From NCBI GenBank assembly GCA_001643675.2, contig LSRY02000008.1, positions 248,001 to 312,000 on the forward strand: 64,000 bases of DNA, given 5' to 3'. The stretch comes from Monocercomonoides exilis PA203. Its lineage: Eukaryota; Protista; Preaxostyla. This document shows positions 22,683-64,000 of this stretch, one piece after another. The position numbers and the translations under genes are program-made. Each line of letters begins with the position of its first letter. Positions within the stretch are counted from its first letter, which is position 1. The notes beneath the pieces are model-generated. The model was given only the letters and a program-made list of their open reading frames with translations. It was not told where the DNA came from and did no database searches.

Positions 22683-25172
22683 TCTGTCTGTGTTTTTGAG
22701 CGGATACAATGAAGTGCTGTTTGTTTTTCAATCGAAAAAGAAAAGATCAAAAAATGAAATAATTTGTAAAGGGCGAATAATATTTTAAATAGCGTTTTTT
22801 CAAAATATGACGAACATATTTCACAAAATTGGTAACAAAATATTATTTATGACAACCGATAAAAATAATCAGAGAGAAAGAGAAAACACGGAAAAAGAAT
22901 GAGAAAAATACAACCGAAATGATAATGATACCAATTGCAGCAGATTGTTAGGAACTTTTGAGCAAAATGAATGAGGAAGAAGAAAAAATTGATGATGCAA
23001 CTAATAAGGTTGTTGAAAATGGAAGAGAGAAAAAAGGAGAGCGATGAGGAAGTGATGGAGATAAAGCATGAAAGCAAATGATGAAATCAGACTTTTTCTC
23101 TTTTTTGGATCTTCTTCTTCTTCTTCTTCTTCTGCATCCGCATAACACTCATCCACAGCATTTGCATAGGCACAGGTGTTTGTGCAATGCTGGCAGAATT
23201 CGAAGCACATGAGCTTGATAACAAAACATTCCCAGTGTCTTTTCAAAAGAGGCAGTTGTCTGTTCAATTTGTGTCGTCTCTGCTGCAGAAGAAGAAGAAG
23301 AAGAAGAAGAAGAAGAAGAAGATATCACAAACAAGTTCCGCTTTTCCCTCTTTCTCTCTCTCTCTCTTTCCTTCGGCTTTTGACAAGATTCGCCTTATGT
23401 GCCTTCCAAAACCTTCCAAAAAAATAAAAAAAGAGAATGTCTTCTTCTCTTTTCCTTCTTATTCCATCCATCTTATTCCTCCATGCTCCCCTTCATTTGT
23501 CATGTCCTTGTCTCTTCAGATGCACCCAACATGTTCTCTTTCCTCATTCCTTGTTCATTCATTGCCATTCATCATTCTTGCAAAAAAAAGCCAAGTTTCA
23601 TGAAAAATAACAAAAGATGATGAAAATCATTGAATAAACATGCAAACCTATGACTTTGTTGCAAATAATCTTCACAAACTTTCTTCTTTCTTCTTCTTCT
23701 TCTTCGCAAAATATCGTCCCTTTCTGCCTGCAAATTCCATCTGTCTCGTCTCCTCTTCTTTTCCACCTCTGCTCCTGAAAATAATACCCAAAGCCCAAAC
23801 CTTCGGTTTTGTTTCACGTGGAATAACTTCCATAAGCTCTGTTCGATTGAAATATCAAAATGTGTTCATTCCATCAGAAGAACCCCTTCCCATCCCTTGT
23901 TGCTGCATCGCCTTTTCTTTTTTTTCTCTCTCTCTTCATTTTCCCTCATTGCAAAAACGCACATCTGCCTCACATCCATTATCTCCTCCACAAGCAATGA
24001 TAATATTCTTTTCTCCTTCTCTCTCAATCTCCCCATTCCCCTTCGCTCTTCTCCCAATAAAAAATAAATGCTCCCATCATTTTTCTGTATCGAGTGATCG
24101 AAGCCATCTTGTGGTCAGCCCCTCATCTCGCTCCATCCACGCAGCACATCTGCCTCCACTTCATCAATGCAAAGTGTCAGCGTTAATGTTCCTTCTTCCC
24201 ATCTTCCTCCGCCTCCACCTCCATCCCTTGCGCTGCAAACGCCAGGCGCAACCTAACAGTCCTCCAAATAATATGCGAAAACTCAAAAACTTCCCTCACT
24301 TTCTTCTTCCTCCCTTCCGCACAATTTTCCACCGAAGTTTCATCCCTAACCGCTCATGTACTCGCAATAACCTCCCTTAACCTTCCACATGTGCCTCCTC
24401 TCTCAGTGTATTTTATAAAACCATCTTCTCCCCATATATCTCCATTTCTCATCCAACTTTTATCATTTCCTCCAATAAAAACATTGTCTATTCGCTCCAC
24501 CCATCTTCCGCCTTCCTTTCCTCCATCTCGTCCCATCTCACTGCATCAAATTCCATTTCTCCAGTAATAAACAAGAACCCCGCCCCTCACTCCTGATGAA
24601 TTCAATAAAGGAAAACCTCCTTTCACGTCCACAATCATTCATTACACATCCTTCATCCTCAGAAAATTCATGTTATAACATCTTCTCATTCATTTCAAGC
24701 TTCGATCATTTTTTCTCCTCCAGAATCCTGTTTCACCCACAAATGTCTCAATCCCTCCAAAACATATTTTTAATTATCTCATGCACCTCAATCAAAACCA
24801 CATGCCCTCACAGCTGCGATGCACAAAGTTGTATCACTTTTTCTTTTCATATCCAAATATTTTTATGGATATGATCCACGAATTTGTTCAAAACAAAGAA
24901 ACTTTCTTTCTCTTGAATGGAATTTGAATTCAAATATAGTCATCTGCACCAGACAAATAAATATCAGAATTGATTATGGACTGTATGACACATTTTTAAA
25001 TTATAATTGCTTTCATTTTATTGTTAAAAAATTCAAAAAATGAATATTTTGTGAAAAAATTTTGTTTTCGTTCAAGACATTTCGCTGCAGTGATGATAAT
25101 AGCTTCATCAAGTTCGATCTTCCATTTTGGTTAGGTTATGAAAGTGGGAACGAAAATTTGTTCAAAACGCGT

Positions 25173-25425
25173 GTGTAATTATTTTTGAAATCATAACTTT
25201 TTTCGGTGTATTATTTTTTCAAAGGATGTTTGTCTTTGGGAAGAGTTTTTCATACAAATGAAAATTTCATCAAAACCATTTCAAAAACAAATGTTAAGCT
25301 GAAATAAAGATGAAAATATCTTTTATAAGCCTTTTCACTCTATGCAATTCTTTCGTTAATATTCAAGTGAAATTTTCAAATAGAAATTTTTGAATGAAAT
25401 AATATGATATCAAAAATAATCTCCC
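25173..25425. mobile_element. MITE family B, older copy, 253 bp
   Basis: GCGT[GTGTAATTATTTTTGAA...TCAAAAATAATCTCCC]ACGT. Absent from the matching site (~62055) in the right arm. Confidence 0.7.
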
Positions 25426-26006
25426 ACGTGTTATTTATTTGATTTGAAAAAAAAATAAAAGTGACTTCAAAAAAAATAATATACAACAAATAAATACATT
25501 TCACCTTCATGCAGTCAGGTGCACCTCAACTTCAAAGCTTTCTTTTCACAAATATTATTATTAAACTCAAATTCACAACACTTTCTCCAAAATAAAACTC
25601 CACCATCAAACTGGTCATCGCTTCACTCTTCTCACTGGTTTACTCCATCTGCAACACTTAGCAGTTCCAAAAACCAAAAACAAAAACAACATTCCATTAT
25701 TGGATTAAACACTTTATAATCATCATTCTTCCTGTTCTTTGCACATCTCCTCCAAAATTCTGCTTTCTATTTTTTTCTCAGCTTTCTTCTCATTCTTTCT
25801 CTTGTCCATCTTTACCAAATACTTGTGTGATGTTATCCACATCCTTGAATCAAAAGATTATTCAACAAATATCTAATATTCACCATTGTTTTTTGATATC
25901 CGAATTTTTTCCATGTTCGTTTCTGATTTTTTGCAAAAGAATTCTCTCTCATCATATTTTTTATTATTCAATTTCTTTTGTCCAAACGTTTGAAAATTTC
26001 ACATTT

Positions 26007-26890
26007 GGGTGATTCTTTTTGATAAGCAACAAATTTATTATATCTGGAAAAAATTAAACAAAACCATATTTGATAAGATTTTGATTCAAAACCTTCAAAT
26101 TACTCCACAATAAAAATAATCTCAAATCATATTCCTTTCTTTGATCAAATTTGCAAAATGTTGAAGTTTGACGATTTTATCTTTAATGATTATCAAACAT
26201 GGTTCAATTTTTTAATCAAGATCTTTTATATTTGCATCTCTTCAAGAAAAATACCCCTTTTGTTTAAAAATGAGACTTCATTTAATTTGTTAAACACAAT
26301 CATTTTTTAATGGGTTAAAAGCACTTCATAATAAAATTTCACTTTCAAATAACAAAGAGACCAATTATCACAATCAAAAAAAAGTCTGATTTATTTCATT
26401 TTTGCAATAAAAAAGAATGGAATTGATGCGAAATAACTTCTGAAATGAAAAAAATAATCTGTTTGATGAGACAGAAAATAAAATATGTGCGACTTTTCAA
26501 AAAGAACAACACACATCATGTCCCACAATTGATAAACGTGGATAAAAAAGTTATTCAAGCCAAAAGAAATGCAAATTTCCAATGTCGAAGCAATTTTGAA
26601 TGTGAAACTATTTTGGCAATAAATCAAATAATTGCTTGATGGGAATTATTTTTGATATTCTTTTATTTTTTAAAAAATATTCAATTTTAAAATTTGTTTC
26701 CGATGTTTGTGAATGATCACTGAAAAGTGGAAGCTCCAATTGACGACATGTTTGTCTTTCTTTCGATCAAATGTTATCTTTTGAAACAACTGAAATATTT
26801 GAAACATTTGTAAGAAAATTAATAATCCCAATGGTGAAAAACGTTGAATTGATGAGCCTCGAAACAGTTTTGATTTTGAAAATAATCACA
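26007..26890. mobile_element. Two further degenerate family-B-like MITEs (~26007-26256 and ~26641-26890), apparently predating the duplication
   Basis: TIR-like ends GGGTGATTCTTTTTGA / TCAAGAAAAATACCC and GGGAATTATTTTTGA / GAAAATAATCACAC at ~250-bp spacing; some of these ends are also present in the right arm. Confidence 0.5.
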
Positions 26891-26942
26891 CAAATGTCTA
26901 TGATTATTATATGGGTGCTTTTCTACAAATGCGCAAACATAT

Positions 26943-27209
26943 GGGACAAAATATTTGACTTCAGGCATTTTCATTGAATAATTACTCATGTAAGATTATC
27001 TTTTTGTGATTAAAATTTTTGAAAAAAATGGGTTTATTTTTTGAAATACATGTGATGTCACATAACATAATGTTATTATATCAATGGCGTATGCTTTCAA
27101 AAATGAAAATCAAATTTATTTGAAATCTGGTTGAGTTTAAAAATGTAATAAGTGAAACAAAACTTTCAATGATTGTGCAAAATAAGCTTGAAAGTCCGTA
27201 TTTTCCCCC
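26943..27209. mobile_element. MITE family A, 267 bp, TSD ATAT
   Basis: ATAT[GGGACAAAATA...TATTTTCCCCC]ATAT. The orthologous site in the right arm (~60270) has a single ATAT. Confidence 0.85.
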
Positions 27210-27667
27210 ATATGTTAAAAATCGATATTTTTGGCAAATAATTGAAATTACAAAGACAATATGGTTCTCCTCATACAAATTTTCATTGTCATTCTTTTCA
27301 AAAAAAGTGTCAAAAAACTGTTCAGGATAATTGTTGAATTAACTTAACAAGAAAAAATAATTGAAATTAAGAAATTAAGAAATAAAGCTATATTTTATCA
27401 AATTTGATTAATACAAACCAATCAAATAAATAAAAGCAGTGACAGAATAAACTTTTTTATTTTTAATTGGAACACACTTGATTAATTCAGACGATGTTCG
27501 TATTTGAACCTTTCAGAAAATTATCAACGGCAGAATAATTCCATTTTGTAAAATTCTCTGTTGAAAAAACCACGAAAAGCTCTTCAAAGGATTGCTTTCC
27601 TTTTTGTGAAATGATGAGAAAAGAAAATTCGAACTATTGAAAAATAAAATATAAAGTTATATTTTCT

Positions 27668-29113
27668 CTAAACATTCACAAAATAGTCTGCAATGTCCGA
27701 TGAAAATGAATAATAATAATATTCATAGGAAAGAAAGTCAAGCAGTTTATTTAAGCTTGTGATGATATCTTCGTATCCTTCTTCTTCCATCTTTTCGAAC
27801 ATTTTCATTTTCATCTCTTTCCTTTCCTCCTCTTTCACTTTTTCCTCCTCCTCTTTTTCATCTTCTGTTTTGTACAATCCACTTGAAATAATATCAAAAC
27901 ACTCCAAGAATCCACTTGTTATTTCGTCATTCAACGTTGGTCGTTGAAACTCCTCCAAAACAACATCAACAGCTCCTCCTTTTAACAAGTCTTCAATTTT
28001 CACAACCCTATTATCTGCTATTTCTTTCAATAAATGAATGCATTGAAGGCTCACTTCTCTGTTATTATCCTTAGCTGCCAGAAATACCCGAACAATACTG
28101 TTTAAAAGTCCGACAAATTCTTCATTCCACATTGTGCAATAGAGAAAATAACGTTCCAAGGTATTTAGCCATCTCAATAAAACAAGCTCTTTTTTTGTCT
28201 CTTTTTCCTCTTTCTCCGCTTCTTTCTCTCTCTTCCTATTCACACTTTTCATCAGCTCTTCCAATTCTCTTTCCGCCTCCCTTAAGAAATGCAGCTCATC
28301 AACAATTACTCCTTCAAAGCTTTTGTAGTATGGCAATCCGTTTATCAAAAACTGCCAAGATGATTGACATGCAAGTCGTGTAAGATTGTGATGCTTTTGA
28401 TGATATTGAATGACCTCCTTGATTTCATTGATGAAAAGTTCTTGCTCCACTTCCTAATGAAAAAATAAGGAATGAAAAATCAATAATATAAAATAAGGAA
28501 ACAGAAATGTTCACACTCCATATCCAAATCCACTCAAAGCCAGCAAAACTATTTCCACTTCTTTTTGTGCCTCTTCGTTTTCTTCTTTATTCAGTGCAAC
28601 TTTCAAAAGGCAAGACACGCCAGTTGAAAGCAATTCCTCAGAAGCCCACCTGTTCAACAAAAGATAGCATTCACAAAGATCAATCAGAAGTTTTTCATTC
28701 TTCTCCTCTTTTTTCTTTTCTTCTTCTATTATCATCTTCTCAAATCTTTTGTCCAACGAAGATTCTTTAAAATGATTGTTCCAAATATGTTTCAATACTT
28801 TGCAATGTCCAATATGCTTCAGCACCAAAATTGCATTTTCCAAAGATAATTTCTTTTCTTCAATCATTTCGTGTATTTTGTTGAATAGATCTGTTTTAAA
28901 AAAAGCATATAATTCTTCTTTATTCATTTCATCAATGACTCTTTTCATTTCTTCTATTTTGACTTTCTGCTCAACTTCGGTGCAATCTTCAAGCTCTGAA
29001 AGCAATCCTTCAATAAAAAAGAAAAACAAAGAAAAAAATCATTGCAAACAAGAATTCAAAAGCAACCACGACTGCTTACCATTGAACTTTTTTGTGTTGT
29101 CCATGCCCTGCAT
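27668..29113 (-). CDS. Lineage-specific helical (ARM/HEAT-like) multigene family protein 'ELEDC', 3 exons (29113-29080, 29007-28517, 28453-27668), ~436 aa
   Basis: GT-AG introns restore one frame (1311 nt). Intron positions and phases are the same in all three paralogues. Conserved motifs include SLENAI, KNEKLL.DL, HHNLT and DLLKGGAV. Confidence 0.8.
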
Positions 29114-29165
29114 TTTTTAAAGTTCATTGTGTCCAGAACACAATGCAGTTTTGCCATTCACATTG
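29114..29165 (-). promoter_or_regulatory. Conserved upstream motif of the ELEDC family (aatgtgaa[tc]ggcaaaact...tg[tg]ttctg...aaaaATGCAG)
   Basis: Found at the same distance from the ATG in all three paralogues, including the copy outside the duplication (46789-46840; 58338-58389). Confidence 0.5.
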
Positions 29166-29889
29166 AAAACGAGAATGTTTGGGCAGAAGAAATTTGCGAA
29201 AAATATTAACACAAATGGAAGTCAAAGTGCGTGCACTCACACCGACATCCTTCGTATATTATCTTTGGCAAGTAATTTCGAAGAAAAATAGAAGTTTTGT
29301 GTTCTTTCTTTTATTTGTTATGGATTCACTGATTGAAAAGCATTATTTGAACTGGAATATCAATTTGCAAAATGAAAGTTGACGAATGAATTCATACTGC
29401 GGAATTTAGAAATATTATTTCCAGTAGAAACTGCAGGCAGTGATGGCAGTGCACAAATATTGAAATTCTGTCAGTTGATTTTTGGTAATTGGATGGAAAA
29501 AGGAAATCCAACAATTTAATTCATAACACAAAAGACGTTGTGTATGTGCTTTTTATTGTTCTTTTGATTGTGAAGATATTTTCATCTGTATCCTCTCTAA
29601 AGTCGTGATTCAGACAATTTATTTGAAAAAGTCAGTTTATTCGTTATTTTGGAAAACAGGGAAGAAGAGATCCAAACACAATCTTACAAATATATTAGAG
29701 CCTGGATATTTTTTGTTACGAATGTTTATGTTACTTATTTTTGACTCAACATGCGCGATGCATCGAAAAACGATGAAAAATGAATTTTGATGGAGCAGAA
29801 ATCAACGGGGTTAGAAGATGTTCAAGACTAAAAAGGAAGAATGATCAATCTCTCTGAAAAGGAAGCGATTTTTGAAGAGAAAGGAGATA

Positions 29890-30050
29890 TTTTCAAACTC
29901 ATTTGTTGGAGAGATTGGGGCAGATGACTGAAACAGGAGATTGGCAGCAGCTACAGCAGAACAAGGCACATTTCTTCGTATCGAAAGGAAAGAACATTGC
30001 TTTTATGGACTTAGGAGAGGGATGGAACTGAATTTGATTCCTTGACTTGA
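29890..30050 (+). pseudogene. PROPPIN (ATG18/WIPI-like) WD40 remnant; second copy ~57460-57620 on the minus strand
   Basis: QTH...TETG/RLAAATAEQGTFLRI...FYGLRRG resembles AH...G.LLATASEKGTLIRV...[FL]RRG; flanked by a frameshift and stops. Confidence 0.5.
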
Positions 30051-30699
30051 GAGCCACAAATACGAGTTAATCTGTCATTTTGGCGTTATACAGGCAGCTG
30101 GAGGCAAATGACAGGTTTCATGGATTAGTCATTTTGCTATCGCCGTTGGAATTATATCATTGAAATATTATCCACAAGGGCAAAGAACGAGGTTGCAATG
30201 CTGAGAATATCCTCCAACAGAAGATATCCGATACTTGAGATCTTAAGTGCGTCTTCTTCTTCAACAACGCCATTGTCATCATCTTCTCCTTCTTCACCTT
30301 CTTATTCTTCTTATTCTTCTTCACCTTCTTCACCTTCTTCACCTTCTTCACCTTCTTCACCTTCTTCTTCTTTCCATGTGTTTTGCTCAGATATATATGT
30401 TAAAGAAAGTTATTCTTTTTTTGGGATTGAAGAAATGTTATTTTCATTCGAAAAACTTTTTGAATGAAAATGTGCGCTTTTCGAAATAGGAGCGAGAGAG
30501 AGAAGGGGAAAGAAGATATTGAGGACGAAGAAGTAGAAGAGGAAGAGGAGGAAGAAGAAGAAGAAGATGATGATGAGAAAGAGGAAGAGGAAGAATAAGG
30601 AAAAAAGAAGACTTTTGTGATGAGAAAGACGAAGTTGATGAAAAACTGGGGAGGTGAAACCGAAGAGTCAATCACGCCCAATGCTCACTCAAAGGATAG

Positions 30700-31050
30700 G
30701 AGCATGTTGTTGATCTCCGTCTCTTGTTTTCACTCATAACTTGTTTTTTTTCACTGCGAAGAAGAAGAAGAAGAAGAAGAAGGTAAAGAAGAAGAGGAAG
30801 AAGAAGATGATGATTGTTATGAAACAGATGGCAAGACAGAAATACTTCTCCCTCTCCTTTTCCCCTCGCCATATCCTCGTGAATCTTCTCAACGTTCTGC
30901 CCATCACATTGAGGCAACCGAAAAGCAGATCTCAATTTTTTCATCATTCCTCCAAAACTGCATTGCAACAAGCTCTGCCAGCATCATCGTCATCCAAAAC
31001 ACCATCAGCTGCCCTTCTTTCTTTTGCGCCTTCGGCTGTTCAGCTTCCAC

Positions 31051-31081
<31 letters not shown>

Positions 31082-32548
31082 CAAACAGGCACATATCGCT
31101 TCGCCTCCACCTCTGCCAATACCCTCCCACAGACATCATTAAAAGCATACACACCTGGTTGTCCAGCACCTTCATCAGCAGCTCAAAATGTTGGCGTTTT
31201 CTCTCTTTTCAATCGGATTGTTCTCTGAAGGAAACAGAAGCGCACTCAAATTATCTTCTTTGCACACGCACGCACGCACGCACACACACACACACACACA
31301 TCTGGATGGCTTATGAACAGCATGAAGAAGTCGTGGCAAAGACATGTCTCCAGCACAGATGCGAAGGAAAAGACAGAGAAAACAAAAGCAGCTTGCATTC
31401 ATCACAGAAGATCCTCAACGGCAACACAGGGTGTGTCTGTGGAGTCTACCAATGGAACACACAGAAAAGAATTCGCCTTCGAACACGATGACTCAACCAG
31501 CCGCCAACAATGGCGATGAAGACGATGAAGAGGAAGAAGAGGAAGATGATGAAGACGATGAAGACGATGAAGAAGAAGAAGACGATGAAGACGATGAAGA
31601 AGAAGAAGACGATGAAGACGATGAAGACGATGAAGAAGAAGAAGACGATGAAGACGATGAAGACGATGAAGACGATGAAGACGATGAAGACGATGAAGAC
31701 GATGAAGACGATGAAGACGATGAAGACGATGAAGACGATGAAGACGATGAAGACGAAGAAGCAAATGGATCACCAGAACATGTGGCATCATTCATTGAAT
31801 TTATCTCCATTTTCTGCTTATCTTCTTTTGTCCTGTTATTATTCAGCAGAAACTCCAGAAACACAAACACATCAGCCACTCCCATCTTTGGCTGCATCTT
31901 CTCAGACTCTCCAAATAACATCTTGATTTTCTTCTCCTCTGCCCTTTCAAGCGCCGTGTCGAAGAACAAGAAGAACGAATGCCTCATCTTTTTTGAACTC
32001 CTTCCTCACAAGATACACAAACAGCCACATCTGTGCAAAGTTCAACAAGAAAAGCTTCTCTCCCCTTGTGTATTATCACATTTCAGACTGATTTGCTCTT
32101 CTTCTGCTTCTCGGCCATCTTCTTGAATACCTCCTTCTTCTCGCTTATTGTCTCTTGTTGCACTTTCGACAGCACCATCAGCATCTTCGCTTCCTTCTGC
32201 ATCCTGTTCATCTTCTGCCTCACAGTTCCCTAACCACTCCTCCTTCTCCTTCTTTCTCCTTCATCTCTTTCATCTTCATCATCTCAATTATCTCCACCAT
32301 CTTCATCATCTTCTTCTCCTTCTCCTTCTCCTTCTTCACCTTCTTCTTCTTCTTCTCTTTGTTGTTCTTCTCGCTCAGCTGTGCCATCTTCCTCTGCAAC
32401 ATGAATGTGATCTTCCTCTTCTCCTTCTTCTTCATCTGCTCATCTGACTTGATTGTCTGCTTCGATATAATTTCGTCTTCTTTTAATCTTTTGCATCAGA
32501 ATGTAATCTCCAAACACATCCTTTTCTTCTTCTTTTCTTTGTTCTTCT

Positions 32549-32580
<32 letters not shown>

Positions 32581-32620
32581 TTCCTGTTAATCTGTTTCTT
32601 CTTCTTTTCAGTTGTCCAAG
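30700..32620 (-). pseudogene. Decayed low-complexity gene of unknown family (twin at ~54780-56730 on +)
   Basis: Fragmented Lys-rich/Ser-rich frames, with similar breaks in both arms. Confidence 0.4.
31516..31760. repeat. (GAAGACGAT)n 9-bp minisatellite
   Basis: Direct reading; the twin is longer. Confidence 0.9.
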
Positions 32621-33196
32621 TGAATGAATGAATGAATATTTGTCCCTTCGATGTCTTCTGCCACACCCTCAGACACTCACACACTTAACTGTTGCTGTGG
32701 CTGATACAAATGAATGCATCCCTGAAGAGATTTGAAATGTGAATGAAAAAATAAAAAATAAAAAAGAAATGAGTTGGTGAAAAGAAATGACTGAATTCAA
32801 TTTTTCGAATGTTTCTTAAAATCTTTGTTCAAAAGCAAAAGAGCAGAAAATATAAGACTCAACATAATTTCACAGGTTTGCTATTTTCCACAACTTGGCT
32901 TTTCATTTTCATTCACTTATAATTTGTTAAACGAACGTCAAATGAAATAAAAATATGAATAATCAATATTAAAATTTTTTTCTGTTTTGAAAAAAATGTT
33001 TGAATAACAAAATGCAACACTGCCAAAAATCATGCAATCGCTTTATGCTCATTTTCTTATTTATTTAAAAAATAAGTTTATTTCTAAATATTACAAACAT
33101 TTATGATCATATATATAATATTTATTTCAAATAATATTTTTTAACGATTGAAATTTTTTCTGCTTATATTGCAGGACGAGCAGCAAAACCGAAGTG

Positions 33197-41620: not shown

Positions 41621-42060
41621 CTCGAAAGAGCGGGAGACTACACCAAAAAAGAAGAAACCTTCAAAAAAGTTATATCGCTCATCAAAGTCAGACCGACTCT
41701 CGACGCGTTCGCGGCTCATCACAATCACAAGCTGGAAAGATGGTGTAGTATAGGAAGCCCCATGCACGAAGACGGGCTGTCAGTTCCTTGGAGTCAGGAA
41801 TGTGTTTTTGCTCATCCTCCGATTCCGCTGATTCCGATGGTGATTCGGAAAGCACAGCAGGAGAGAGCTCAAGTTGTTCTTCTTCTGCCGAACTGGAAAG
41901 GCCAGAACTGGGAAGTTCTTTTGCGCCACAGCAACTTCTATAGTTGGGAGCTGAATTTCAATATCCAGGAACTGATGGAACGAACATCAATGAAGAAGAT
42001 AGGAGCATATCTTCCTCCTGGGAAGCTCAGGCTAATTCTTCTGAATCCCTCAAAAGAAAA
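41620..42060 (+). pseudogene. DIRS-associated Dam-like N6-adenine methyltransferase domain
   Basis: RPTLDAFAAHHNHKL...DGLSVPW...FAHPPIPLIPMVIRK...VVLLLPNW..QNW matches the DIRS1 MT domain pattern. Confidence 0.75.
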
Positions 42061-52362: not shown

Positions 52363-54141
52363 TTATTCCGTTCCCGATTCTATCTTCAACTTCAAGTGTA
52401 TTTCCTTTCCACTTTCGTTCTGATGCTTTTGTAACATTTCCTTGAGCCAACGCATTGCATCTGTCGCTCCATCATTATCTGCAACAACAACAACAAATTC
52501 ATCGTATTTCATCCATTCCGGGATCTCTCTTCTCGCATATTCTTCCCAATAGTCAATCATCGTTTTCCCAGCCTTATCCTTAAGTTCATTTTTATGCCTC
52601 ATCCATTCTGGTGGTTCAGTTTCAGTGAACTGAATCCACATCATCGCCATTGTTCGTCCCAGGATATAGGTTCGTTCAATGTCATGTCTCATCCATTCTG
52701 GTGGCACATTCTTCACATTTTCTATCCATTGCATGGCAATTGTCAAACCATAACTGTTACCAAGTATAATATCGTGTTTCATCCATAATGGTGGGTCTTT
52801 CTTCACAAATTGAATCCACTTCATTGCCATCGTATTTCCTTCCTTGTCAGCAAGCGTGGGATCGTGTCTCATCCACACTGGAGGATCAGCTCTTACGAAA
52901 ATAATAAAATATATTGCCATCGTCCATCCATCGTTGTCTGCAAATTCAGCTTCGTGTCTCATCCATTCAAGTGGTTCTTTTCTGTTATGAATGATCCACT
53001 TCATGGCCATTGTTCTTCCATTTTTATCAGAAAATGTCTCTTCATGTCTCATCCATTCCGGCGGTTCTGCCTTCACATATTTTATCCATCCCATAGCCAT
53101 CGTTTCTCCTTTGTTATTTTTTTGTGTTATTTCATGCCTTATTGATAAAGGTGGTTCTGTTTTGACCTCCTTTATCCACAGCATGGCCATTGTTTCTCCT
53201 TTCTTATTTCCAAGTGTAATTTCATGTATCATCCACATTGGTGGTTCTGTCTTCACGTATTCAATCCATAGCATGGCCATTGTTTGTCCGAATATTCCTG
53301 TAATTTCGTTGTCATGTCTCATCCATTCTGGAGGTTCTGTTTTAACTTGCTTTATCCAATGCATAGCCATTGTCCTGCGAAAATTATCTTTAAGTGTTGT
53401 ATCGTGTCTCATCCATTCTGGAGGTTCCGTATGGGTAAATCCAACCCACAGCATTGCCATTGTCCAACCATAATTGTTGCGAAGTGTAATATTATGTCTC
53501 ATCCATAAAGGAGGTTCTGTCTTGACCTCCTTTATCCAGTGCATTGCCATTGTAAATCCTTCCTTATCAGCAAGCGTAATATCGTGTCTCATCCATTCAG
53601 GTGGTTCTGTCTTGGTAAAGAAAATCCAAAACATAGCCATCGTCCATCCGTCGTGATCAGAAAGTGTAATGTCATGCCTCATCCATTCAGGTGGTTCTGT
53701 CTTCACATATTCAATCCAATATATAGCCATTGAGCATCCTTTATGATTTGTATATGCAATATCGTGCCTCATCCACTTCGGCGGTTCTGTATTGATGTAA
53801 ATAATCCAATAAAAGGCCATTATTGATCCAGTTTTATTTGCAAGTTTAATGTCATGTCTCATCCATTCTGGTGGCTCTGTTTTGATGTTTGTGATCCACA
53901 TCATCGCCATTGTTGATCTATTATTATTTCTGAGAGTTATTTTATGTCTCATCCATTGTGGAGGTTCCGTATGGGTAAATCCAATCCACAGCATTGCCAA
54001 TGTCCAACCTTTATTATCATGAAGCGTTGTTTCATGTCTCATTTCCAACGGAGGTTCTGTCTTTTTCTCAACAATCCATCGCATTGCTTCTGTTCTTCCA
54101 TCTTCGTCCCTTTTCAATGGATAACTTTCCAATTCTTGCAT
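52363..54141 (-). CDS. 30-aa ankyrin-like tandem-repeat protein (WMRH family), 18 units; positional twin of 33197-35392
   Basis: Intact ORF (MQELESYPLK...). N- and C-termini match the 33197 gene, but the internal repeat array differs. Confidence 0.85.
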   Translation of the reverse strand: MQELESYPLKRDEDGRTEAMRWIVEKKTEPPLEMRHETTLHDNKGWTLAMLWIGFTHTEPPQWMRHKITLRNNNRSTMAMMWITNIKTEPPEWMRHDIKLANKTGSIMAFYWIIYINTEPPKWMRHDIAYTNHKGCSMAIYWIEYVKTEPPEWMRHDITLSDHDGWTMAMFWIFFTKTEPPEWMRHDITLADKEGFTMAMHWIKEVKTEPPLWMRHNITLRNNYGWTMAMLWVGFTHTEPPEWMRHDTTLKDNFRRTMAMHWIKQVKTEPPEWMRHDNEITGIFGQTMAMLWIEYVKTEPPMWMIHEITLGNKKGETMAMLWIKEVKTEPPLSIRHEITQKNNKGETMAMGWIKYVKAEPPEWMRHEETFSDKNGRTMAMKWIIHNRKEPLEWMRHEAEFADNDGWTMAIYFIIFVRADPPVWMRHDPTLADKEGNTMAMKWIQFVKKDPPLWMKHDIILGNSYGLTIAMQWIENVKNVPPEWMRHDIERTYILGRTMAMMWIQFTETEPPEWMRHKNELKDKAGKTMIDYWEEYARREIPEWMKYDEFVVVVADNDGATDAMRWLKEMLQKHQNESGKEIHLKLKIESGTE

Positions 54142-55610
54142 ATCTGTTGTATATTTTGCTCTACCGCTCAACGCTTCGAATTCCCTGCTCGTCCTGCAAT
54201 ATAGGCAGCAAAAATGTCAATCGTTAAAAAGTATAATTTGAAATAAATATTATATATTTGATCATAAATGTTTGTAATATTTTGAAATAAACTTATTATT
54301 TAAATAAATAAGAAAATGAGCATAAAGTGATTGTATGATATTTTGCAGTGTGGCATTTTGTTATTCAAACATTTTTTTCAAAACAGAAAAAAATTTAATA
54401 TTAATTATTCATATTTTTATTTCTTTTGACGTTCGTTTAACAAATTATAAGTGAATGAAAATGAAAAGCCAAGTTGTGAAAAATATCAAACCTGTGAATT
54501 AATGATGAGTCTTGTATTTTCTGCTCTTTTGCTTTTGCACCAAAACTCTCAGAAACATTCGAAAAATTGAATTCAGTCATTTCTTTAAACCAACTCATTT
54601 CTTTTTTATTTTTCATTTTTTCATTCGCATTTCAAATTTCTTCAGGGATGCATTCATTTGGATCAGACACAGCAACAGTTGAGTGAGTGTGAGTGTGTGT
54701 GTGCGTGTGTGTGTGTCTGAGGGTGTGGCAGAAGGCATCGAAGGGACAAATATTCATTCATTCATTCATTCACTTGGACAACTGAAAAGAAGAAGCAGAT
54801 TAACAGGAGGAAGAGGAAGAAGAGGAAGAAGAAGAAGAAGAAGAATAAAAAGATGTGTTTGGAGATCGACATTCTGATGCAAAAGATTAAAAGAAGACGA
54901 AATTAAATCGAAGCAGACAATCAAGTCAGATGAGCAGAAGAAGAAGAAGAAGAAGAAGAGGAAGATCGCATTCATGTTGCAGAGGAAGATGGCACAGCCG
55001 AGCAAGAAGAACAACAAACAGAAGAAGAAGAAGAAGAAGAAGAAGGAGAAGGAGAAGGAGAAGGAGAAAGTGAAGAAGATAATGAAGATGATGAAGATGA
55101 AAGAGATGAAGGAGAAAGAAGGAGAAGGAGGAGTGGTTAGGGAACTGTGAGGCAGAAGATGAACAGGATGCAGAAGGAAGCGAAGATGCTGATGGCACTA
55201 CCGAAAGTGCAACAAGAGACAACAAGCGAGAAGAAGGAGGTGTTCAAGAAGATGGCTGAGAAGCAGAAGAAGAACAAAGCAGTCTGGAAGGTGATGATCC
55301 ACAAGGGGAAAAAGCTTTTCTTGTTGAGCTTTGCACAGATGTGGCTGTTTGGGAAGATTAAGAGGACGGAGTTCAATAAAAACGATGCATTCGTTCTTCT
55401 TGTTCTTCGACACGGCGCTTGAAAGGGCAGAGGAGAAGAAAATCAAGATGATATTTGGAGAGTCTGAGAAGATGCAGCCAAAGATGGGAGTGGCTGATGT
55501 GTTTGTGTTTCTGGGGTTTCTGCTGAATTATAGCAGGACAAAAGAAGATAAGCAGAAAATGGAGATAAATTCAATGAATGATGCCACATGTTCTGGTGAT
55601 CCATCTGCTT

Positions 55611-55932
55611 CTTCGTCTTCATCGTCTTCATCGTCTTCATCGTCTTCATCGTCTTCTTCTTCTTCATCGTCTTCATCGTCTTCATCGTCTTCTTCTTCTT
55701 CATCGTCTTCATCGTCTTCATCGTCTTCATCGTCTTCATCGTCTTCATCGTCTTCATCGTCTTCATCGTCTTCATCGTCTTCATCGTCTTCATCGTCTTC
55801 ATCGTCTTCATCGTCTTCATCGTCTTCATCGTCTTCATCGTCTTCATCGTCTTCATCGTCTTCATCGTCTTCATCGTCTTCATCGTCTTCATCGTCTTCA
55901 TCATCTTCCTCTTCTTCCTCTTCATCGTCTTC
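55611..55932. repeat. (ATCGTCTTC)n 9-bp minisatellite, expanded twin of 31516-31760
   Basis: Direct reading. Confidence 0.9.
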
Positions 55933-58389
55933 ATTGCTATTGTTGGTGGCTGGTTGAGTCATCGTGTTCGATGAGGCGAATTCTTTTCTGTGTGTTCCAT
56001 TGGCAGACTCCACAGACACATCCTGTGTTGCCGTTGAGGATCTTCTGTGATGAATGCAAGCTGCTTTTGTTTTCTCTGTCTTTTCCTTCGCATCTGTGCT
56101 GGAGACATGTCTTTGCCACGACTTCTTCATGCTGTTCATAAGCCATCCAGATGTGTGTGTGTGTGTGCGTGTGTGTGTGTACAAAGAAGATTATTTGAGT
56201 GCGCTTCTGTTTCCTTCAGAGGACAATCCGATTGAAAAGAGAGAAAACGCCAACATTTTGAGCAACTGACGAAGGTGCTGGACAACCAGGTGTGTATGCT
56301 TTTAATGATGTCTGTGAGAAGGTATTGGCAGAGGTGGAGGTGAAGTGATATGTGTCTGTTTGTCTCTCTCTCTCTCTCTTTCTCTCTCTTTGTGGAAGCT
56401 GAACAGCCGAAGGCGCAAAAGAAAGAAGGGCAGCTGATGGTGTTTTGGATGACGATGATGCTGACAGAGCTTGTTGCAATGCAGTTTTGGAGGAATGATG
56501 AAAAAATAGAGATCTGCTTTTCGGTTGCCTCAATGTGATAAGCAGAACGTTGAGAAGTTTCATGAGGATATGGCGAGGGGAAAAGGAGAGAAAGAAGGAA
56601 TTCTGTCTTGTCATCTGTTTCATAACAATCATCTTCTTCTTCTTCTTCCTCTTCTTCTTTCCCTTCTTCTTCTTCTTCTTCTTCTTCTTCTTCGCAGTGA
56701 AAAAAACAAGTTATGAGTGAAAACAAGAGACGGAGATCAACAGCATGTTCCTATCCTTTGAGTGAGCATTGGGCGTGATTGATTCTTCGGTTTCACCTCC
56801 CCAGTTTTTCATCAACTTCGTCTTTCTCATCACAAAAGTCTTCTTTTTTCCTTATTCTTCCTCTTCCTCTTTCTCATCATCATCTTCTTCTTCTTCCTCC
56901 TCTTCCTCTTCTACTTCTTCGTCCTCAATATCTTCTTTCCCCTTCTCTCTCTCGCTCCTATTTCGAAAAGCGCACATTTTCATTCAAAATATTTTTCGAA
57001 TGAAATGAATATATCTTCAATCCCCAAAAAAGTGTTTCTTTCATTAACATATACATCTGAGCAAAACACATGGAAAGAAGAAGAAAGTGAAGAAAGAGAT
57101 GAATGAGATGAAGGAGATAAAGGAGATGAAGGAGATGAAGGAGATGAAGAAGGTGAAGAAGGTGAAGAAGGTGAAGAAGGTGAAGAAGGTGAAGAAGGTG
57201 AAGAAGGTGAAGAAGGAGAAGATGATGACAATGGCGTTGTTGAAGAAGAAGACGCACTTAAGATCTCAAGTATCGGATATCTTCTGTTGAAGGATATTCT
57301 CAGCATTGCAACCTCGTTCTTTGCCCTTGTGGATAATATTTCAATGTTATAATTCCAACGGCGATTGCAAAATTACTCATATCCATTAAACCTGTCATTT
57401 GCCTCCAGCTGCCTGTATAACGCCAAAATGACAGATTAACTCGTATTTGTGGCTCTCAAGTCAAGGAATCAAATTCAGTTCCATCCCTCTCCTAAGTCCA
57501 TAAAAGCAATGTTCTTTCCTTTCGATACGAAGAAATGTGCCTTGCTCTGCTGTAGCTGCTGCCAATCTCCTGTTTCAGTCATCTGCCCCAATCTCTCCAA
57601 CAAATGAATTTGAAAATATCTCCTTTCTCTTCAAAAATCGCTTCCTTTTCATAGAGATTGGATATTCTTCCTTTTGGCCTTGAATATCTTCCAATTCCGT
57701 TCATATCCACTTCATCAAAATTCATTTTTCATCGTTTTTCGATGCATCTCATGTTGAGTCCATAATAATTGCCATAAACATTCGTAACAAAAAATATCCA
57801 GGCTCTAATATATTTGCAAGATATTATTTGTCTCTCTTCTTCCCTGTTTTCCAAAATAACGAATAAACTGACTTTTTCAAATAAATTGCCTGAATCTCGA
57901 CTTTGGAGAGGATACAGATGAAAATATCTTCACAATCAAAAGAACAATAAAAAACGCATACACAACGTCTTTTGTGTTATGAATTAAATTGTTGGATTTC
58001 CTTTTTCCATCCAATTACCAAAAATCAACTGACAGAATTTCAATATTTGTGCGCTGCCATCACTGCCTGCAGTTTCCACAGGAAATAATATTTCTAAATT
58101 CCGCAGCATGAATTCGCTCGTCAACTTTCATTTTGTCAATTGATATTCCAGTTCAAATAATGCTTTTCAATCATTGAATCCATAACAAATAAAAGAAAGA
58201 ACACAAATCTTCTCTTTTTCTTCGTAATTACTTGCCAAAGATAATATACGAAGGATGCCGGTGTGAGTGCGCGCACTTTGACTTCCATTTGTGTTAATAT
58301 TTTTCGCAAATTTCCTCTGCCCAAACATTCGCGCTTTCAATGTGAACGGCAAAACTGCATTGTGTTCTGGGCACAATGAACTTTAAAAA

Positions 58390-59807
58390 ATGCAGGGCAT
58401 GGACAACTCAAAAAAGTTCAATGGTAAGCAGTTGTGGTTGCTTCTGAATTCTTGTTGATTGTGTTTCTATCTTTTCTTTTTTATTGAAGGATTGCTTTCA
58501 GAGCTTGAAGATTGCACCGAAATTGAGCAGAAAGAGATAGTTGAAGAAATGAAAAGAGTCATTGATGAAATGAGCAACGATGAATTCAGATCTGTTTTCA
58601 CAAAAGAAATATTCAACAAAATTGATAAAATGATCGAAGAAAAGAAAATATCTTTGGAAAATGCTATTTGCTTGTCGAAGCATCTTGGATATTGCAAAGT
58701 GAAGAAAATTTTGTTCATTTTAAGCTTTGAAGGATCTTCGTTGTGTAAAAGATTTGAAAAGATGATGAATAACAAAAATGATAAGAAAGAAGGAAAAAAC
58801 GAAAAGCTGTTGGTTGATCTGAGCGAATCCTATCTTTTGATGAACCCATTACCTTCACCTGAATTGATTTCAATCAGTGTGCCTTGCATTTTGAAGGCTG
58901 CGTCGGACAAAGAAGAAAACGAAGAAGCTAAAAAGAAAGTGGAAATCGCTTTGGTGACATTGGGCTCTATTGATAAGTGGGAGGTAGAAAGAGAATTGTT
59001 TTTGTTGATTTGTTGATTTGTTGATTTCTTTCTCGTTTTTCAAAGTGTGTTGGACAAGAACTATATTTGCATGAAATCAGAGAAATTATCCAATATCATC
59101 AGGAACATCACAATCTGTCGCGATTTGCTTATCATTCTGCTTGGAAGTTTTCGATTCTCCGATTATACAGGAATAGAGAGCTGGAGGAAGTTGTTGTGAA
59201 TGAGCTGCATTTCGGAAGAGAGGCAGCAAGAGAATTGGATGAGCTGGCAAAGTGTGTGGATTGGAAGGGAAGAGAAGAAAGATGGGGAGAAGATGAAGCA
59301 AAAGAAGCATATATGATATGGAAATGGGTTAATGTGATTTTTGATTACTTTTCCATGTGCGAATTGTTGAATAAAGAATTCATCGTTCTTTTAAGCAGTA
59401 TTGTTCGGGTATTTCGAGCAGCAAGGGACAATTACGAAATAATAAGCTTAAGATGCATATTAGCGCTAAAGGAAGCAGAAAACAGAGCAGTAAAAGTTGA
59501 TGACTTGCTGAAAGGAGGAGCTGTTAATGCTGTTTTGGAGAAGATGCAGCTGCAAACATTGAATAAATTTGAAACATATGAATTCTTGTTATTTTTAATT
59601 GAGATTCCAATTCGATTGAAAGAAAAGAAAGATCGCACGGCTGACAAAGCGAAAAGAAAGGCAACAAAAAAAGAGTTTTTGGAAAAGATGGAAGAACTCG
59701 GATATGAAGATACCATCACAAGCTTTTATGGAATATTCAGATTTATTAACATGTCTTATTATCCTCAAATATCGTTGGATGTTTCTGATTATTTTGTGAA
59801 TGTTTAA
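58390..59807 (+). CDS. ELEDC-family paralogue, 3 exons (58390-58423, 58490-58983, 59046-59807), ~429 aa; positional twin of 27668-29113
   Basis: 34-nt first exon (MQGMDNSKKFN), gtaag donor, 1290 nt in frame. Confidence 0.8.
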
Positions 59808-60871
59808 GGAAATGAAATGTTTCGATTTTTTTTTTTTTTTTGACTCAAAAGTTGTTCTTCTTTCTTTTTCCATCATTTCGCAAAATGGAAAACAATCCTT
59901 TAAAAAGTTCTTCGTTGCTTTTTCAACTGATAATTCTGCAAGGAAAAATTCGACCGTTGATAATTTTCTGAAAGGATCAAATAATAACAGCATCTGAATT
60001 AAACAAGTGTGTTTCAATTTTAAAAAAAAGTTTACTGAAAGTGCATTAATTTATTTGATCGGTTTGTGTAATTCAAATTTGATAAACTATATCTTTATTT
60101 CTTTTTTTCTGAATTTCAATAATTTTTCTTGTAATGTTAATTCAACAATTATCTTGAACAGTTTTTTGATACTTTTTTTGTGAAGAATAACATTAAGAAA
60201 TTGAAACAGAAGAACCATATTGACTTTGTTATTTCAATTATTTGTCAAAAACATCAATTTTTTTCAAACATATGTTCATATAAAGAGAAACACCTATGAA
60301 TCATTGATGGACATGTGGTGATTATTTTCGAAATCTCAATTGTTTCGAGATAAAGAGCCCTCAAAAGTTTTTCATCTTTGACTTTTTAATTTTCTTGCAA
60401 ATGTTTCAGGCATTTCAGTTGTTTGTCTTTCTTTAATTGAAAGAAAGACAAATACATCGTGAACTGGAGCATTCACTTTTCAGTGCTCATTCACAAACAT
60501 CAGAAACATATTTTTAAATTGAAATTTTTTTCTGGAAAAAATTGAATATCAAAAATAATTCCCATCAAGCAATTATTTGATTTATTGCCAAAATAGTTTC
60601 ACATTCAAAACTGTTTCCACATTTGAAATTTGCATTTCTTTTGGCTTGAATAGCTTTTATATCCACGTTTATCAATTGTTGGACAATATGTGTATTGTTC
60701 TTTTTGAAAAGTCGCAAATGTTTTATTTCCGATAAATAAAAAAGGCACTTTTTTCGATCATTTTTTACAATTAATCCATCAACCTTTATCTCTTCACTGA
60801 TTAGATAAAATAAACCAATGTGATTTGAGAATATTTTCATAATGGAAAATTTGATGGATTTGAATCAAAAT

Positions 60872-61128
60872 GGGTGATTATTTTTGAAATCATAACTTTT
60901 TTCGGAGTGTTGATTTTTAAAATGTCATATTTCTTTGGAGAGGAATTATATATTCGAAAGAAAAAAATCATGGAAAATTTTAAAAAAATCAATGCTTGAT
61001 ATTTTAATCATGTTGAAATTATTATTGAAAGGAGGAACAACTTTTCAGTGTTCATTTGTCAAAATTCAAAGTGAATTCCCAAACCGAAATTTTTGTAAGA
61101 AAAAATATGTATTCAAAAATAATCACCC
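60872..61128. mobile_element. MITE family B, 257 bp, perfect 17-bp TIR, TSD AAAT
   Basis: AAAT[GGGTGATTATTTTTGAA...TTCAAAAATAATCACCC]AAAT. The empty site is at ~26078 in the left arm. Confidence 0.9.
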
Positions 61129-61343
61129 AAATCTTATCAAAAAATGTTTTGTTTAATTTTTTCCAGATATAATAAATTTGTTGCTTATCAAAAAGAATCA
61201 CCCAAATGTGAAATTTTCAAGCGTTTGGACAAAAGAAATAGAAGTCAATAAAATATGATGGGAGATATCTATTTTGTGAAGAATCAGAAAGGAACATGGA
61301 ATAAAGTTGAATGATAAAAAACAATGATGAATATTAGATATTT

Positions 61344-61610
61344 GGGGGAAAATTTGGACTTTCAAGCTTTTTTTGCACAAGGCATTGAAAAATTGCTTCA
61401 CTCATAACATTTTTAACTTAACCAGATTTCAAAATAAATTTGATTTTCTTATCCGAAAACAGTCATCGTTGAAATCAAAACAGTAAGTTTTGTGATATTT
61501 CACTAATGACAAAAAATGGACACATTTTTAGTGTGCTTTTTGACATAAAAAAGTTTATGAAAAGTACAGAATTTTTCAGTGAAAATGCCTGAGGTGAAAT
61601 ATTTTGTCCC
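61344..61610. mobile_element. MITE family A, 267 bp, TSD ATTT
   Basis: ATTT[GGGGGAAAAT...ATTTTGTCCC]ATTT. The empty site is at ~25867 in the left arm; internally homologous to 26943-27209. Confidence 0.85.
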
Positions 61611-63869
61611 ATTTGTTGAATAATCTATGATTCAAGTATGCGGATAACAACACATAAGTATTTGGTTAAGATGGACAAGAGAAAGAATGAGAAGAAAGCC
61701 GAGAAAAAAATAGAAGGCAGAATTTTGGAGGAGATGTGAAAAGAACAGGAAGAATGATGATTATAAAGTGTTTTATCCAATAATGGAACAATTTATTTTG
61801 ATAAATGTTTTTGGAACTGCTGAGTGTTGCAAAAGGAGTTAACCAGTGAGAAGAGTGAAGCGATGACCAGTTTGATGGTGGAGTTTTATATTGGAGAAAG
61901 TGTTGTGAATTTGAGTTTTATAATCATATTTGTGAAAAGAAAGCTTTGAAGTTTATGTGCATCTGACAGCATGGAGGAATAATGAATTTATTTGTGGTAT
62001 ATTATTTTTTTTTGAAAAATTAATTTCGTTTTTTTTTCAAATCAAATAAATAATTCGAATATTGAACAAATTTTCGTTCCCACTTTCAAAACCTAACCAA
62101 AATGGAAGACCGAACTTGACAAAGCTATTATCCTCACTGCAGCGAAATATCTTGAACGAAAACAATTTTTTTTTCAAATTATGAATATTTTGTTTGTCTT
62201 GAAAAATAAAACAAAAGCAATAATCATTGAAATGTGTCATAAAGGCCATTATAACTTCTGATATTCATTTGTCTGGTGCAGATACCTCTATTTGAATTCA
62301 AATTCCATTCAAGAGAAAGTTTTAAATCACAATTTTGTGAGATATTCGTTGATCATATCCATTAAAAATTTTGGACATTAAAGGAAAAAGTGATACAACT
62401 TTATGCATCGCAGCTGTGAGGGCGTGTGGATTTGATTGAGGTTTAAGATACATTTATAAATACTGTTGGAGAGGGATTGAGACATTTGTGGGTGAAACAG
62501 GATTCTGGAGGAGAAAAAATGATCGAAGCTTGAAATGAATGAGAAGATTTTTCAACAAGAATTTTCTGAGGATGAAGGATGTGTAATGAATGAATGTGGA
62601 TGAGAAAGGAGGTTTTCCTTTTTTGAATTTATCAGGAGTGAGGGGTGGGGGTTCTTGCTTATTATTGGAGAAATGGAATTTGATGTGGAGGAGATGGGAT
62701 GAGATGGAGGAGAGGAAGGAGGAAGATGGGTGGAGCGAATAGAAAATGTTTTTATTGGAGGAAATGATAAAAGTTTGATGAAAAATGGAGATATATATGG
62801 GAGGATATGGTTTTTATAAAATACACTGAGAGAGGAGGCACATGTGGAAGGTTAAGGGGGTTATTGTGAGAACATGAGCGGTTAGGGATGAAACTTCGGT
62901 GGAAAATTGTGTGGAAGAGAGGAAGAAGAAAGTGAGGGAAGTTTTTGAACTTTCACATATTATTTGGAGGACTGTTAGGTTGCGCCTGGCGTTTGCAGCG
63001 CAAGGGATGGAGGCGGAGGCGGAGGAAGATGGGAAGAAGGAACATTAACGCTGACACTTTGCATTGATGAAGTGGAGGCAGATGTGCTGCGTGGATGGAG
63101 CGAGATGAGGAGCTGACCACAAGATGGCTTCGATCACTCGATACAGAAAAATGATGGGAGCATTTATTTTTTATAGGGAGAAGAGCGAAGGGGAATGGGG
63201 AGAATGAGAGTGAAGGAGAAAAGAATATTATCATTGCTTGCGGAGGAGATAAAGGATGTGAGGCAGATGTGCGTTTTTGCAATGAGGGAAAATGAAGAGA
63301 GAGAGAAAAAAAAGAAGGCGATGCAGCAACAAGGGATGGGAAGGGGTTCTTCTGATGGAACGAACACATTTTGATATTTCAATCGAACAGAGCTTGTGGA
63401 AGTTATTCCACATGATACAAATCCGAAGATTTGGGTTTTGGGTATTATTTTTAGGAGCAGAGGTGGAAAAGAAGAGGAGACGAGACAGATGGAATCTGCA
63501 GGCAGAAAGGGACGATATTTTGCGAAGAAGAAGAAGAAGAAAGAAGAAAGTCTGTGAAGATTATTTGCATCAAAGTTATAGGTTTGCATTTTTATTCAAT
63601 GATTTTTATCATCTTTTGTTATTTTTCATGAAATTAGGTTTATTTTGCAAGAATGATGAATGGCAATGGATGAACAAGGAATGAGGAAAGAGAACATGTT
63701 GGGTGCATCTGAAGAGACAAGGACATGACAAATGAAGGGGAGCATGGAGGAATAAGATGGATGGAATAAGAAGGAAAAGAGAAGAAGACATTCTTTTTTT
63801 TTTATTTTTTTTGAAGGTTTTAGAAGGCACATAGGGCGAATCTTGTCAAAAGCCGAAGGAAAGAGAGAG

Positions 63870-63903
<34 letters not shown>

Positions 63904-64000
63904 GGAAAAGAGGAACTTTTCTGTGGTGACTTCTTCTTCTTCTTTTTCTTCTTCTTCTGCAGCAGAGACGACACAAATTGAACAGACAACTGCCTCTTTT

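Follow-up and report, generated by a model that had tools for sequence, protein, structure and literature searches.

We analysed a stretch of 64,000 nucleotides (nt) of the Monocercomonoides exilis PA203 genome, referred to here as the window, which contains an inverted duplication carrying two genes in each arm: a gene built of 30-residue ankyrin-like repeats, called here the repeat gene, and a member of a family that we designate ELEDC. The bodies of both genes differ far more between the arms than the non-coding DNA around them. The data point to ectopic gene conversion as the cause: the bodies would have been rewritten by short tracts copied from paralogues after the segment was duplicated, and the flanks would have been homogenised by the same process. 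We assign a probability of about 0.72 to this explanation. Neither the ankyrin-like repeat family nor the ELEDC family was found described in the literature on M. exilis.

The inverted duplication and its conserved flanks

Self-BLAST and MAFFT alignment indicated that positions 23245-36701 of the window pair with 64000-51081. With 10 kb beyond the window added, the arms extend over 22825-36701 and 64482-51081, and the spacer between them is 14.4 kb long. The ELEDC exon models, three exons per arm, rest on GT..AG sites and reading phase. In each arm one uninterrupted open reading frame (ORF) makes up the repeat gene, with 731/732 amino acids (aa) in arm 1 and 592/602 in arm 2. The features of the module are as follows.

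22825..36701, no strand: arm 1, module copy A (from self-BLAST, the alignment and the flanking DNA)
51081..64000, no strand: arm 2, module copy B, which continues about 480 nt past the window end
27668..29113, minus strand: ELEDC gene of arm 1 (exons 29113-29080, 29007-28517 and 28453-27668; 436 aa; predicted armadillo-like, mosaic body)
58390..59807, plus strand: ELEDC gene of arm 2 (exons 58390-58423, 58490-58983 and 59046-59807; 429 aa)
33197..35392, plus strand: repeat gene of arm 1 (731 aa in the feature list, 22 units and an acidic tail; mosaic body; its sequence occurs in RNA libraries)
52363..54141, minus strand: repeat gene of arm 2 (592 aa from the ATG, 18 units)
29116..32600, no strand: intergenic non-coding DNA, confined to the three module copies (distance between A and B about 0.056)
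32600..33196, plus strand: conserved 5' flank of the repeat gene (84-92% identity among 11 genes)
35393..37753, plus strand: conserved 3' flank of the repeat gene (88-99% identity in at least eight copies)

Identity between the arms was measured on the MAFFT alignment in 200-column windows, summed by segment, and expressed as the Jukes-Cantor distance (K). The left flank (23245-25165) is 93.2% identical (K 0.071), the intergenic DNA (29116-33196, 4035 aligned nt) 94.6% (K 0.056) and the 3' flank (35393-36700) 96.4% (K 0.037), whereas identity drops to 67.3% in the ELEDC body (27668-28925; K 0.43) and to 71.1% in the repeat-gene body (33277-35270; K 0.365). The switch points between conserved and diverged DNA fall within coding sequence, the first and last codons behaving like the flanks, and the reading frames of both genes are open in both arms. 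An earlier note, made from the sequence alone, had claimed that the intact gene bodies are diverged and the non-coding DNA conserved between the arms, and these distances (K 0.37-0.43 versus 0.037-0.071) bear it out. The contrast is real at this duplication but not peculiar to it, being seen in at least seven repeat genes and in a third module, and between the arms identity in the ELEDC 3' flank is no higher than about 82%.

The third copy of the module (copy C; C80:729.9-747.6 kb) lies on the same contig, 450 kb off, and the profile is the same in the three pairwise comparisons. From 36492 to 38083, some 1.6 kb that run past the arm boundary, copy C matches copy A at 99-100%. The intergenic DNA (29116..32600), which contains a microsatellite at 31515-31760, serves as a near-neutral clock. 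Its informative sites make A and B sisters (192 sites versus 75 and 73), with the exceptions clustered. In copy C an insertion of about 8 kb (L001/L002, C80:735079-743079), absent from both window arms, lies between the intergenic block and the repeat-gene 5' flank. Positions 26138-26480 of arm 1 do not align to arm 2, and an adjoining segment of 280 nt (26936-27213 vs 61340-61617, 75% identical) is differently placed in the two arms; both look like local rearrangements that followed the duplication.

The layout of conserved flanks around unlike bodies is not confined to this duplication: at least seven repeat genes of the contig have it, with a common 5' flank of about 0.6 kb and a common 3' flank of 2.3 kb or more. 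Among the seven genes compared, the 5' flank is 86-92% identical (one copy lacks it), the first 90 nt of the gene are 92-99% identical in the six genes that keep this flank, and the 3' flank is 90-97% identical. Their bodies are 66-74% identical, no more than any two units within one gene (0.668 +/- 0.072). The 3' flank is itself a mosaic, in which blocks of informative sites join first B and C, then A and B, then A and C (22 runs versus 61.5 expected, P<=2e-4). In arm 2 it stops at the equivalent of 36701. A search of the 3' flank for a conserved ORF as the reason for its conservation found none. A separate 550-nt repeat (37746-38297), 88-96% identical to copies on contigs C25, C10, C37 and C80, abuts its end and is probably a transposable-element fragment.

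A second palindrome is formed by a tail-to-tail inverted pair of repeat genes (L005/L006; C80:89500-96500 and C80:98000-104500) whose spacer measures about 1.66 kb. Either the pair is very young or it is held perfectly homogenised. Its flanks and its 832-aa gene are all 100% identical and, therefore, gene-targeted hypermutation is absent.

Mosaic bodies of the two gene families

To describe the bodies we used a sample of 47 loci, with about 27 repeat genes and 26 ELEDC copies. Tracts in the repeat genes were scored as exact matches; megablast at 94% identity misses such tracts by extending into unlike DNA. Internal units of the arm 1 gene reach at most 83% identity with units of arm 2 or copy C. 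Matches of 90-100% were found for 13 of its 23 units in other paralogues (L008, L015, L018, L005/6, L019 and L013, among about 25 other family genes compared), a different gene for each unit; the background unit-to-unit identity is 0.668 +/- 0.072. In arm 1, two tracts, of 148 nt and 177 nt, match L008 without a difference, and a third, of 157 nt, matches L015 likewise. In copy C three such tracts follow directly on one another: 356 nt shared with L023, 368 nt shared with L011 and 141 nt shared with L005/6. The joins between exact tracts sit at unit boundaries, where a scaffold-coding stretch is common to all units.

The ELEDC body is a finer mosaic than that of the repeat gene. In a three-way alignment, arm 2 and copy C agree at 97-100% within 28581-28222, where arm 1 is 35% different; in other blocks it is arm 1 that equals copy C. 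Among the 26 paralogues the best donor switches every 80-350 nt (copy C 94-100%, L029 94%, L026-28 93-99%; median about 0.7), and a triplet runs test gave 185 runs where 292 +/- 10 were expected (P<1e-4). Both large ELEDC exon frames are open in 21 of the 26 sampled paralogues. The exact tracts, the donor switching along both genes and the significant runs tests support the earlier proposal of segmental gene conversion from paralogues.

The same note had suggested comparing synonymous divergence (dS) in the bodies with divergence in the flanks. The two are not equal: dS between the ELEDC genes of the arms is 0.67 in exon 2 and 0.84 in exon 3, at least ten times the flank distance. The ratio of non-synonymous to synonymous divergence (dN/dS) between these genes is 0.36-0.57, and crude pairwise NG86 estimates for the repeat units are about 0.5-0.71 at hypervariable codons and 0.13-0.15 at scaffold codons. 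Selection on the ELEDC protein and on the repeat scaffold is purifying. Diversifying selection, which the note had also put forward, is neither needed nor shown, dN/dS being below 1 throughout.

The encoded proteins and the rest of the window

The repeat period is exactly 30 residues throughout, versus about 33 for ankyrin, and the unit consensus is DITLxDxxGxTMAMxWIxxVKTEPPEWMRH. Among 356 distinct units, positions 9, 11-14, 16, 17, 22-25 and 27-30 are nearly invariant, and entropy exceeds 3 bits at positions 5, 8, 10, 15, 18 and 19 and reaches 2.6 bits at position 7; units are 0.67 identical in nucleotides and 0.54-0.66 in amino acids. The Pfam ankyrin models (PF00023, PF12796 and relatives) detected no ankyrin family at E<=0.1 in the protein of either arm. 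An AlphaFold2 (AF2) model of eleven units, built on 13 paralogues, is a stacked loop/helix/helix solenoid (pLDDT 90.5) with a second helix of only about 3 residues. Its top Foldseek matches in the PDB are all ankyrin proteins or designed ankyrin repeat proteins (DARPins), with E 2.7e-9, probability 1.0 and TM 0.3-0.5. A family profile searched against 1.84 billion protein cluster representatives matched only 256 proteins. True ankyrin proteins were matched at E 1e-13 to 1e-17, including P0107 (E 1.1e-16) and P0129 (E 3.3e-13), in both of which Pfam recognises 9-19 canonical ankyrin repeats; P0005, P0056 and P0059, which are intermediate, match Ank_2 at a borderline level. The predicted fold and the profile homology together indicate that the family is a divergent, shortened, 30-residue ankyrin-type solenoid.

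In a hand alignment to the DARPin consensus, the hypervariable positions 5, 7, 8, 10, 18 and 19 fall on the randomised DARPin positions 33, 2, 3, 5, 13 and 14. In the model, the fixed scaffold with its 6-7 hypervariable surface positions looks like a variable recognition scaffold, and in this respect the earlier impression of a recognition protein stands. The closest relatives outside this genome (P0001-P0004, proteins from JGI metagenomes) combine the same repeats of about 30 residues with a C-terminal RING finger, which hints that in related organisms E3 ligases use the array to recognise their substrates. RING-bearing family members were sought in this genome, and the three RING matches are all unrelated proteins. 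No signal peptide or membrane span was seen in the proteins on inspection by eye only. One subfamily (the gene at 14064-15848 on the minus strand and loci L019-L023) starts with MGN, and the glycine at position 2 could be an N-myristoylation signal, hence could confer membrane association. Other repeat subfamilies have four or five distinct C-terminal tails.

Expression was assessed over 32650-36750 with contigs from four RNA libraries of one study (2024 metatranscriptomes of a mixed culture). Between about 33198 and about 36055 these contigs agree with arm 1 at every position, and they leave 32650-33197 and 36075-36750 essentially uncovered, which argues for transcription over DNA carry-over. 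The transcript includes about 660 nt of the conserved 3' flank, the remainder lying outside it. The 5' flank (32600..33196) is presumed to be the promoter because the contigs do not cover it.

For ELEDC, the separate exons were used as protein queries and exon 3 alone was modelled. There was no match to any Pfam family, Arm and HEAT included, and the ARM-like clusters of the Atlas scored 0.93-0.94, under the recognition threshold. The exon 3 model is all-helical (pLDDT 68), and its best PDB matches are designed armadillo proteins with weak E of 0.04-0.2, which weakly suggests a helical protein of the ARM/HEAT type. In many ELEDC paralogues homology ends at about 27600, some 65 nt past the stop codon. 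Five of them (L029, L030, L032, L036 and L044) are homologous to one another upstream, past the equivalent of 29603, where arm 1 breaks off; this break belongs to copy A alone and does not mark the end of an element.

Other members of the two families and a retrotransposon remnant are found in the remainder of the window.

14064..15848, minus strand: repeat-family member of the MGN-start subfamily (from its ORF and family comparison)
21759..22709, minus strand: short repeat-family member (307 aa, 7 recognisable units)
45372..46729, minus strand: third ELEDC paralogue; it lies in the spacer and has about 70% identity to each arm copy
39194..43356, plus strand: remnant of a DIRS-like retrotransposon within the spacer (reverse transcriptase PF00078, E 4.6e-14, then Dam-like methyltransferase PF05869, E 4e-5, their frames overlapping)

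In the broken DIRS-like element, which plays no part in the mechanism, we saw no ORF for a tyrosine recombinase. The module had been described as a mobile block, a description that the data do not support: no terminal inverted repeats bound either gene unit, and the reverse transcriptase in the spacer is that of the DIRS-like element. We also considered and rejected cargo of a DNA transposon (Pack-type), which would carry terminal inverted repeats and a target-site duplication; in both gene units the only inverted matches are of low complexity. On the plus strand, an open frame of 3048 codons (1286-10432) consists almost entirely of E/K/S/R low-complexity sequence with internal repeats, gave no match in Pfam, shows a strongly negative GC skew and may not be a real gene. 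A G+C-rich region (48400-50650, plus strand; about 46%) has open frames, one with a faint Armadillo-repeat match (PF00514, E 0.08), and is possibly an unrelated conserved gene just inside the spacer beside arm 2. Scans for tRNA and Rfam families gave zero matches in the window. With about 35% G+C, microsatellites, introns and a retrotransposon, the window DNA is eukaryotic in character.

Competing explanations, known parallels and implications

We propose that one segment of about 14 kb, with an ELEDC gene and a repeat gene head to head, was duplicated at least twice, giving arm 1, arm 2 and copy C. All parts of these copies would exchange short stretches (about 50-370 nt) with homologous DNA through ordinary homology-directed repair, probably as unprogrammed recombination of the germline type, and the outcome would be set by the donor pool. 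Homologues of the flanks are few and nearly identical, so that conversion homogenises them (concerted evolution). Homologues of the bodies number more than 100 for the repeat gene or about 1000 for ELEDC and are about 30% diverged, so that each tract brings in foreign sequence and the twin bodies become patchworks of ancient appearance. In the repeat gene, the invariant scaffold-coding stretch ending each 90-nt unit provides in-register homology, leading to swaps of whole units with the frame kept. Once diverged, the bodies would probably be shielded from arm-to-arm homogenisation. The order of events, like this shielding, is our reconstruction.

The main uncertainty is whether the bodies were overwritten after a recent duplication or are old and lie beside homogenised flanks. 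We favour overwriting because tracts of foreign origin match exactly and the intergenic clock is coherent. Several observations weigh against it. About 40% of the units and several ELEDC segments have no donor above 85% in a sample limited to about 27 repeat genes and 26 ELEDC copies. A whole-genome search with two ELEDC segments of 340-370 nt returned nothing above 80% identity; shorter windows revealed tracts of 90-99%, and the absence of donors is attributed to tracts shorter than the query, although old divergence would look alike. The collinear unit matches between A and B are weak (78-83%), and the bodies could predate the homogenisation of the flanks. In addition, transfer of a tract between two genes could run either way, and exchange may occur somatically.

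Because of these weak collinear matches and undetected donors, there is room for an ancient duplication in which the bodies are old paralogues and continuing conversion, from arm to arm and from cassette to cassette, keeps only the non-coding DNA young. The demonstrably mosaic flanks agree with it, as does the 99-100% identity of A and C along 1.6 kb beside bodies of 70% identity. We nevertheless consider it unlikely. The module-only intergenic DNA, 4 kb long, with its coherent A-B sister signal and a K of 0.056, fits a single dated duplication, the bodies hold exact tracts of 150-370 nt from genes outside the modules and so are being overwritten, and the young palindrome L005/L006 has identical bodies. 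Moreover, its mechanism is that of overwriting by conversion, and the emphasis alone differs.

A bolder proposal is that the more than 100 ankyrin-like genes are a natural 'DARPin library', an intracellular variable-recognition repertoire of an amitochondriate protist, whose flanks and scaffold homology were selected for frequent mitotic exchange of units; we regard this as a long shot. On this reading, clonal populations would keep producing new binding specificities, and the relatives that fuse the array to a RING E3 ligase would belong to the same picture.

We hold it highly improbable that the genes form a programmed system of cassette diversification, with the flanks as recombination or expression anchors and active somatic swapping of units, as in trypanosome VSG (variant surface glycoprotein), vlsE or lamprey VLR (variable lymphocyte receptor). 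The conserved ends with a hypervariable core, the in-register unit swaps and the variable positions on the predicted binding face recall such systems, and some tracts with zero differences must be very recent. The first of these traits is shared with antigenic variation in Plasmodium var, Anaplasma msp2, Borrelia vlsE and trypanosome VSG, as are mosaics made by segmental gene conversion among many paralogues clustered on the chromosome. In M. exilis, however, there is neither an expression site nor a set of silent or partial cassettes, since the donors are full-length genes with open frames and their own conserved 5' and 3' flanks, which also speaks against the locus of antigenic variation or immune receptors with dedicated machinery envisaged earlier. 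No associated recombinase or deaminase was seen, and the unrelated ELEDC family and the non-coding flanks are mosaic too. The products, lacking a visible signal peptide or membrane anchor, are probably intracellular, and the host is a commensal gut protist.

Nor do the data favour a linked system of two families, as had been suggested: common descent of the three modules from one segment accounts for the pairing. An ELEDC copy was found within 10 kb of 6-7 of about 55 listed repeat genes, a weak test made by hand comparison of incomplete lists, and this is no more than expected for a family of about 1000 copies in 82 Mb. Most of the approximately 1000 candidate ELEDC copies and of the more than 100 repeat genes elsewhere are not listed as neighbours.

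An artefact of assembly or polishing is barely credible. The assembly was made from Nanopore reads with Canu, Nanopolish and ten rounds of Pilon (PMC8767320), and multi-copy families are prone to mispolishing, so that haplotypes might have been misassembled or paralogue sequence pasted in by the ten short-read rounds. But the arms are inverted, 14.4 kb apart, and differ by indels and a rearranged segment, the third copy lies 450 kb off, and reads of a 70%-identical paralogue would map too poorly to be pasted in. Two mosaic junctions of arm 1 are bridged by exact contigs from the Illumina RNA libraries (33360-33613 over the junction at 33572; 34835-35094 over that at 34939), which counts against a chimera of assembly or polishing. 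Equally hard to maintain is divergence by point mutation, driven after a recent duplication by strong diversifying selection or by targeted hypermutation: frames kept at about 30% divergence and variable positions clustered on one repeat face would suit it, but it is largely refuted by synonymous divergence as inflated as the non-synonymous (dS 0.67-0.84 with dN/dS 0.36-0.57, and 0.5-0.7 at hypervariable codons) and by diverged segments that retain the family-conserved positions and match other paralogues, and the L005/L006 pair is identical.

Among described systems, the closest parallel to ectopic conversion in these genes appears to be the exchange of repeats in fungal NLR sensor arrays. 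In Podospora HET-E/NWD and related proteins with WD40, ANK or TPR repeats, the repeats are highly conserved internally, and gain, loss and exchange of whole repeats have been ascribed to ectopic gene conversion (PMC13449251). Common to both are solenoid arrays whose scaffold is fixed and whose binding face carries a few hypervariable positions, exchange of whole repeats between different genes, and intracellular proteins. On the other hand, the M. exilis proteins consist of repeats and short tails, with no NACHT, NB-ARC or other effector domain in Pfam. Their units are 54-66% identical in amino acids and 67% in nucleotides, below the 80-100% of the high conservation seen in fungal arrays. The variable positions give no sign of positive selection (dN/dS 0.51-0.71, crude pairwise NG86), repeat-induced point mutation (RIP) plays no part, and the non-coding flanks are shared family-wide.

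The likeness to ankyrins and DARPins lies in the predicted fold (AnkB, ankyrin-1 and DARPins, Foldseek E about 1e-9) and in the motif D-x-x-G-x-T, which aligns. The M. exilis unit differs by its period of 30 instead of 33, a second helix cut to one turn, TMAM in place of TPLH, an invariant W and the ending TEPPEWMRH, and Pfam ankyrin models miss the window proteins. The architecture of inverted arms and spacer, with non-coding arm DNA kept alike by conversion, resembles the ampliconic palindromes of the human Y chromosome, and the arms of the palindrome L005/L006 are 100% identical. Genes of the Y palindromes are homogenised with their arms, whereas those of M. exilis evade this and grow apart, since a large pool of diverged paralogues is also among their recombination partners.

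The repeat family represents a 30-residue ankyrin subclass that was previously unrecognised and is overlooked by Pfam; its fixed scaffold and variable binding face parallel engineered DARPins, and the RING-ligase fusions of metagenomic relatives give rise to a testable hypothesis of substrate recognition. Both families help to account for part of the 35% of the M. exilis genome listed as 'unclassified repeats'. Paralogue dating and dN/dS in this genome are unreliable unless recombination-aware methods are used. The process proposed here is a familiar route of gene-family evolution, and nothing shows that the cell does so on purpose. Ectopic gene conversion, homogenising or diversifying according to the diversity of the donor pool, would explain by a single process the paradox of genes that are less conserved than the junk DNA surrounding them.

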